A program made the position numbers and the translations under genes. This document shows, in pieces, positions 14,686 to 14,845 of a stretch of DNA of 64,000 nucleotides (position 1 is its first letter; each line of letters begins with the position of its first letter). The DNA is from Saccostrea cucullata (lineage: Eukaryota): NCBI RefSeq assembly GCF_032062105.1, contig NW_026933278.1:186001-250000 (forward strand). Reading direction: 5' to 3'. The notes under the pieces are model-generated. The model did no database searches. It worked only from the letters and a program-made list of their open reading frames with translations, and was not told the origin of the DNA.

Positions 14686-14845
14686 GGTTCAATTGGCTTA
14701 TACAGAACTAGGAGCTATCGAAAGTCCAAACAGTTACGAACATCTTCGTAGGAACGATACGGCATATACTGAACTCGGAACTCTTGAAAGCCCGAATCAT
14801 TACGAACATCTTCAACAATATGCAGAAATCAGTGATATGATGTAA
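14686..14845 (+). CDS. Terminal exon of the receptor with two tandem ITAM motifs
   Basis: ttttctttgatAG|g then VQLAYTELGAIESPNSYEHLRRNDTAYTELGTLESPNHYEHLQQYAEISDMM*. Phase-compatible with the upstream exon chain. Confidence 0.75.

Follow-up and report, generated by a model that had tools for sequence, protein, structure and literature searches.

Vertebrate paired receptors, such as Siglec-5/14, PILR, Ly49, and KIR, have near-identical ectodomains, which are kept alike by conversion, and opposite signalling tails. CED-1, Draper, MEGF10, and Jedi-1 are type I receptors with a multi-EGF-like ectodomain and a cytoplasmic ITAM (PMC8092387, PMC6219719). Src kinases phosphorylate ITAMs, and tandem-SH2 kinases then recognise them, for example in the Draper-Shark and MEGF10-Syk pairs (PMC8092387), and bulky transmembrane phosphatases are kept out of Draper contacts (PMC6219719). 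In the Pacific oyster, the single-pass receptor CgIgR binds and recruits CgSyk through its ITAM (PMC6994640). The MEGF/GBD RPTPs of the snail SudRes1 locus are duplicated, EGF-rich molluscan genes with a variable EGF number that are linked to schistosome (parasite) resistance, and the term ITAM has no occurrence in that paper (PMC12297450). Botryllus FF/FcoR and Hydractinia Alr are invertebrate multigene receptors that turn over rapidly and whose tails are of the ITAM, hemITAM, or ITIM type; their described inhibition runs via ITIMs and not via a same-ectodomain phosphatase, and their ectodomains are unrelated to the one described here (PMC12582321; bioRxiv 10.1101/2022.03.04.482883).

The window analysed here is a stretch of 64,000 nucleotides from the oyster Saccostrea cucullata. 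The receptor gene that it contains belongs to a type I family in which a signal peptide is followed by a rod built from six-Cys EGF-like repeats, an uncharged transmembrane (TM) helix, and a tail of ~90 aa. Compared with the CED-1/Draper/MEGF10/Jedi-1 group, it showed 32-33-aa six-Cys repeats in one giant exon, two ITAMs in the tail, multiple gene copies, and a receptor tyrosine phosphatase (RPTP) twin. The oyster receptor was expected to be distinct from Draper/MEGF10 on account of a missing NPxY, and this was upheld: the local frame check found only PNxY in the window tail. Pfam did not detect an EMI domain in the ectodomain exon, whether in the window or in an intact paralog, although Pfam misses the EGF-like repeats too and its sensitivity is limited here. 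Orthology with Draper/MEGF10 was ruled out on these two features. By analogy, the receptor probably shares the Src > Syk/Shark logic of that group, and it would work in the manner of Draper, or of an Fc-receptor gamma chain with an ectodomain of its own. CgIgR differs by five Ig domains, a single ITAM, and no described phosphatase partner (PMC6994640), and the SudRes1 RPTPs by a galactose-binding domain that the oyster family lacks. As in the vertebrate pairs, the oyster ectodomains are highly similar, the signalling tails differ, and exchange is limited to the ectodomain. In contrast to those pairs, the activating oyster member has its own ITAMs with no charged TM residue or adaptor, the partner is a putative catalytic RPTP and not an ITIM receptor, and the genes lie on different contigs of a fragmented assembly.

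Gene Structure and Splicing

Table 1. Features of the receptor gene and inserted elements, in window positions.
Feature	Position	Strand	Remarks
Ectodomain exon, predicted short form (about 295 codons)	3324..4208	+	CXXC-rich module at N-terminus; EGF-like repeats with six Cys, 32-33 aa each; closes at strong phase-1 internal donor
Eroded remainder of long ectodomain exon	4209..5269	+	aligned with three paralogs
Repeat-like, probably MITE, in place of remaining ectodomain	5270..5442	.	MITE assignment and right edge judged by eye
Transmembrane exon	5670..5789	+	helix without charged residue
Cytoplasmic micro-exon, 25 nt	7291..7315	+	junctions in RNA-type contig on paralog
Cytoplasmic micro-exon, 32 nt	7418..7449	+	frame check; RNA-type contig on paralog
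KolobokD-type DNA transposon in intron 4	7809..13842	+	TTAA flanks; paralogs without this element
Cytoplasmic micro-exon, 22 nt	14575..14596	+	frame check; RNA-type contig on paralog
Terminal coding exon	14686..14845	+	two ITAM-like units and fifth tyrosine motif; stop 14843-14845
ITAM-like unit 1, YxxL-x8-YxxL (YTEL-x8-YEHL)	14699..14746	+	frame reading from 14684
ITAM-like unit 2, YxxL-x8-YxxL (YTEL-x8-YEHL)	14765..14812	+	Asp at -3; frame reading from 14684
Fifth tyrosine motif YAEI	14819..14830	+	family's conserved third Tyr, two residues past last ITAM

The five exons from the TM exon to the tail exon had GT-AG ends and phases 1, 2, 1, 2 in the window, with the acceptor AG of the tail exon at 14684-14685. 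Exons were searched singly, and joined exons were used only for a local frame check, in which a single open frame ran from the TM helix to the stop.

Reads were placed on a 98%-identical paralog, which lies on the same contig in minus orientation and holds all junctions within 5.1 kb. The original prediction had proposed the junctions 5789>7291>7418>14575>14686. On the paralog every equivalent was found joined in one contig of run X1 (depth 6.8), which runs from the proximal EGF exon through the TM exon and all three micro-exons into the tail exon; run X1 is RNA-type by guess, and the window copy itself is known by frame. The 22-nt exon of this contig differed from the paralog at a few bases, and the contig is therefore another allele or another paralog. 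Raw reads of X15 covered the tail exon of the paralog at a mean depth of 3.6, while adjacent intron bins were near zero. Expression in these samples was low. The ITAM-like units thus lie in the intracellular tail of a membrane protein assembled by splicing, with the splicing evidence coming from the paralog.

Tyrosine Motifs of the Tail

Both YTEL-x8-YEHL units, YAEI, and the stop were read in one frame, as had been predicted. The other reading frames of the tail exon were closed and were ruled out. In DNA this rich in AT, single ITAM-like matches are common by chance (19 observed in the six window frames versus 10.7 +/- 3 simulated), whereas a double match occurred in 0/60 simulations. A chance origin is ruled out for the double unit in this way, and not for single units.

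The two units had been described as a 66-bp duplication with six synonymous and three amino-acid differences. The period was correct, but the match covers only ~17 codons (44/66 nt across one whole period). Within the 16-codon core there were five synonymous and three non-synonymous differences; the sixth synonymous one comes from the Ala codon just before the core. All three amino-acid changes fell on spacer positions, as claimed. An acidic residue shortly before the first Tyr, which is a trait of ITAM receptors, was present as Asp at -3 in unit 2 and in 5/16 units overall, and was missing from unit 1. A PDB search with the tail gave no match, and a search of the 50% library gave RefSeq P0001 as its sole true match. 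This 128-aa model was considered as an adaptor without an ectodomain and was ruled out, because a splice acceptor marks its TM exon and the exon upstream is conserved.

The Tail Family in Oysters

An own-genome homology search with no motif requirement matched the tail to 14 other S. cucullata loci. Three of them carried near-identical double-unit tails and three carried separately duplicated double units with a 14-residue linker, so that the linkers of the two separate tandem duplications measured 7 and 14 residues. Another three combined one unit with two extra tyrosines, and in the remaining five a third tyrosine came after a single unit. This single-unit form was also observed in lectin-EGF receptors of Ostrea edulis, whose ectodomain combines an F5/8 lectin with EGF repeats, and in a Magallana gigas gene, which has the same N-terminal ectodomain as the Saccostrea receptor and a YSEI-x8-YEDL tail. 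The predicted conservation of the Y/L spacing was found in the 14 loci and in both other species, with one paralog unit lacking its second Tyr. The canonical Yxx[LI]-x8-Yxx[LI] pattern was present in 24/25 aligned units, always with an 8-residue spacer. Among 16 non-redundant units, the first Y, the first L/I, the second Y, and the last L/I were present in 16/16, 16/16, 15/16, and 16/16, respectively; this set was gathered with a motif-based pattern, so its conservation is partly built in, and the own-genome tails come from the unbiased homology search. In the same 16 units the spacer G, P, and N were conserved to the same degree as the leucines.

The purifying selection proposed for the tail depended on the depth of comparison. 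It was invisible among the four closest tails, with eight non-synonymous and no synonymous changes against locus L004. At depth it was visible, with pooled pS of 0.64 and pN of 0.24 over pairs that are not independent. The tail is an old oyster module that was tandemly doubled at least twice and became attached to several ectodomains, one of them not of the EGF type. Its double unit was elaborated recently and repeatedly from a tail with one ITAM and a third Tyr, which several different ectodomains bear. An expanded oyster multi-EGF receptor family with a spliced, conserved, multi-ITAM-like tail was the core of the original prediction, and the homologs and the RNA-type contig of the paralog bear it out.

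The M. gigas genome codes the YSEI-x8-YEDL tail at L036:26040-26187, while the RefSeq model P0058 stops without an ITAM; model P0060 reads YEDF, and transcript P0059 (run SRR25455077) lacks the second Tyr. As the P0058 case indicates, the terminal exon is easily mis-annotated, and the family is probably under-counted. A neighbour gene (L019/L020, C15415:72.9-85.2 kb, minus strand), which RefSeq models as a 128-aa protein without an ectodomain, has a related double-ITAM tail, a TM exon, and a non-EGF upstream exon that gave no Pfam hit. It lies 20-30 kb from the intact paralog, with further copies on C19948 and C21968, and it was duplicated together with the EGF-ITAM gene as a set on two contigs.

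An Ectodomain Shared with a Receptor Tyrosine Phosphatase

The ectodomain is the more telling feature of this receptor. Its best outside match was a dual-domain RPTP of C. virginica (63% over 297 aa), followed by matches of ~33%. The Saccostrea ortholog of this RPTP lies on contig C1020 of the genome (G000), where TM, juxtamembrane, D1, and D2 exons were found in order at 46-82% identity. This contig beyond 43 kb, as well as C17908 and C23133, is known from match coordinates. The C. virginica ortholog carries the HC(X5)R motif; on C1020 the exon of this motif was matched at 74% identity, and two narrow patterns had no match there.

The C1020 ectodomain exon showed 93% DNA identity to window 3318-5269, and the RPTP and ITAM-receptor ectodomains were 92% identical over 300 residues. 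Between C1020 and the ITAM copy on C21968, 7,638 nt, including two small introns, were 91.9% identical; identity fell to background at the acceptor and past the last shared exon. The inner introns of this block were 75-89% alike. Ectodomain dS between the PTP gene and ITAM copies (0.20-0.26) lay inside the range among ITAM copies (0.16-0.30), with dN/dS of 0.14-0.17. Fifty informative sites among four copies formed 14 runs (permutation p=5e-5), which indicates a mosaic, and one tract ties the window copy to the PTP gene. In a tree of the first 300 residues, from which the frameshifted C19474 was left out and in which the C. virginica branch was long, all Saccostrea copies grouped together and a PTP-only clade was rejected (AU p=0.0016). 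At the level of the aligned copies, these results show mosaic exchange between the ITAM receptor and the RPTP, confined to ectodomain exons.

The C. virginica RPTP and the M. gigas ITAM ectodomain were only 62% alike, and the matching is therefore shown only in Saccostrea. As M. gigas has an ITAM-type gene with the same ectodomain, either both tail types on this ectodomain are older than the split of these genera, or the coupling happened repeatedly.

The length of the rod ranged from about 295 to ~2,400 aa, depending on the copy and the splice donor. On C1020 one coding exon of ~5.2 kb (L031:1262-6510) carries six-Cys repeats over ~1,750 codons; in all, the RPTP ectodomain there amounts to ~2,400 aa, while a C. 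virginica isoform uses only ~295. Atlas neighbours of the ectodomain were molluscan EGF_laminin clusters, a weak signal. The proximal exon matched Pfam EGF_2 (E=6e-4), and an AlphaFold model of the N-terminal 200 aa had a pLDDT of 44.

Judged from motif and exon matches, there is a large EGF-RPTP expansion in the Saccostrea genome. At least 46 PTP catalytic-motif exon ends were counted (C9836, C15807, C8763, and C19122 among the contigs). Several were in tandem on C9836, C8763, and C19122, and those contigs hold EGF-repeat exons too. At C12409:316.8-318.7 kb and 413.9-414.7 kb of G000, open frames of 876 and 991 codons encode dual PTP domains without interruption; unlike the intron-rich RPTPs, these are possibly retrocopies.

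State of the Window Copy

The original prediction had missed the damage to the window ectodomain, which only an internal donor could bypass. By comparison with three paralogs, a 4-bp deletion at 4305 causes a frameshift with a stop near 4496, a 9-bp deletion lies at 4803, and three Cys are lost in the eroded remainder. Homology to all three paralogs stops at 5269, and their membrane-proximal EGF exon had no match anywhere in the window. The signal exon, 2.5 kb upstream of the window, has a TGA at codon 5. The KolobokD-type element (definition in PMC9587614) encodes a Mutator-like transposase, a DEDDh exonuclease, and PML_C according to Pfam, and has short imperfect terminal inverted repeats. 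An intact-looking paralog lies 143 kb away (C15415:42.5-55.4 kb); its signal exon is open, and it also has an exon of 830 codons, the proximal EGF exon, and the TM and tail exons. Other copies are broken, such as C21968 with a TGA near codon 1545 and C19474 with a frameshift.

Whether the window copy is dead, with a tail exon simply too young for decay, is evenly balanced in our estimate. The TGA, the frameshift, the truncation, and the 6-kb transposon all speak for a pseudogene. So do the window tail, which is one base off that of the intact paralog, and the non-synonymous changes per site, which were alike on both sides of 4209 (13/701 and 18/844). However, every ectodomain lesion and Cys loss lies 3' of the donor 4208|4209, which is the top-scoring donor of the big exon, has phase 1, and was found in all copies; the same position is where the exon ends in the C. 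virginica RPTP P0004 and in paralog C9733. The window-private synonymous/non-synonymous changes shifted across this donor from 16/13 before to 3/18 after (p=0.004), although a mosaic origin of the 5' part could yield the same pattern. A private in-frame ATG at codon 8 of the signal exon leaves a plausible signal peptide. An assembly error behind the 4-bp deletion seems unlikely, as the site is not a homopolymer and other lesions and apparently relaxed selection occur alongside. Judging by these signals, the window copy would be either a short receptor (~430 aa), made via donor 4209 and the downstream ATG, or a pseudogene, the two being about equally probable.

Other Contents of the Window

At 45285-49168 the window holds convergent ORFs, with a YqaJ/lambda-exonuclease and PHD on the plus strand and a DDE_Tnp_4 transposase on the minus strand, as in an ISL2EU/Harbinger-like element. 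A SWIM-containing second fragment was seen near 52224-52751. Arrays of a 156-166-bp tandem unit, typical oyster repeat elements, occupy 6222-6950, 16652-17414, 43000-43864, and 54790-55651. A 156-bp-type array also directly follows the short ectodomain exon of paralog C9733.

Proposed Signalling and Alternative Explanations

Oyster ITAM-Syk signalling has already been published (PMC6994640), and the tail alone is therefore less surprising. In the literature, of which our coverage was partial, we found no paper on a same-ectodomain ITAM/RPTP pair, nor on an oyster EGF-ITAM receptor or MEGF10-RPTP. The shared ectodomain suggests a putative on/off pair sensing one common ligand. Ligand clustering would let a Src-family kinase phosphorylate the YxxL pairs, which would then dock a tandem-SH2 kinase (Syk, possibly Shark) and so drive phagocytosis or an ERK-type output. 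The putative RPTP would bind the same ligand and set the threshold by dephosphorylation; alternatively, it may be a receptor exploited by pathogens, with the ITAM gene as its activating counterpart. Gene conversion would keep the ligand specificity of the two matched. As a whole, the reading as an activating receptor of Src/Syk type, paired with a phosphatase whose ectodomain is kept matched by gene conversion, has, in our view, about as much chance of being right as of being wrong. A fuller version, in which the matched ITAM receptor and catalytic RPTP also differ in length (~295 versus ~2,400 aa, via the shared donor) in a way that tunes phosphatase entry or exclusion in the manner of CD45, is a tentative possibility, and the length-tuned segregation of receptor and phosphatase in it is speculative.

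The tail may be activating without any pairing, the shared ectodomain being a footprint of recent duplication and exon shuffling under birth-and-death, with the RPTP independent. Duplication and shuffling give a common ectodomain without a paired function. The same tail family stands on unrelated ectodomains (the O. edulis F5/8 lectin plus EGF and the neighbouring non-EGF exon), many copies are broken, the ITAM and RPTP genes were on different contigs of a fragmented assembly, and the likeness of the shared block extends to its inner introns. However, the combination is old, as M. gigas has it, while the Saccostrea ectodomains are young and mosaic, which requires repeated exchange or repeated capture. 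We consider the birth-and-death account unlikely, although it deserves weight.

In an inhibitory or switch-like tail, the first tyrosines of both units, which are 22 residues apart with Ser/Thr at -2, would bind SHP2/Corkscrew or SHIP and not Syk. Draper-II works via an ITIM and Corkscrew (PMC8092387), unit 2 is ITSM-like, and Ser stands at -2 in 10/16 units, which is also compatible with an ITIM. The first half-site LAYTEL had been noted to fit the ITIM consensus. The fit holds, but its L is private to the window copy; the three closest paralogs have S, with which the consensus is also satisfied. The -2 position varies among other copies (F, T, P, R), with no fit in M. gigas or several paralogs, and the invariant trait is instead the 8-residue spacer between the YxxL pairs. 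Inhibition through this tail is accordingly improbable. YxxL is also the AP-2 sorting consensus, and single ITAM-like matches do arise by chance, but endocytic or sorting YxxPhi signals of a scavenger or adhesion receptor with incidental ITAM spacing are very improbable, as a fixed spacing over three genera and two separate whole-unit tandem duplications would be unexpected for them.

Among molluscan 'MEGF10-like' genes and EGF-RPTPs, many lack an annotated function, and some map to snail parasite-resistance loci. If the pairing of ITAM receptor and phosphatase holds true, a same-ectodomain pair would provide a testable signalling logic for such molluscan genes, and paired activating/inhibitory recognition could be built with an enzyme as its off-switch.
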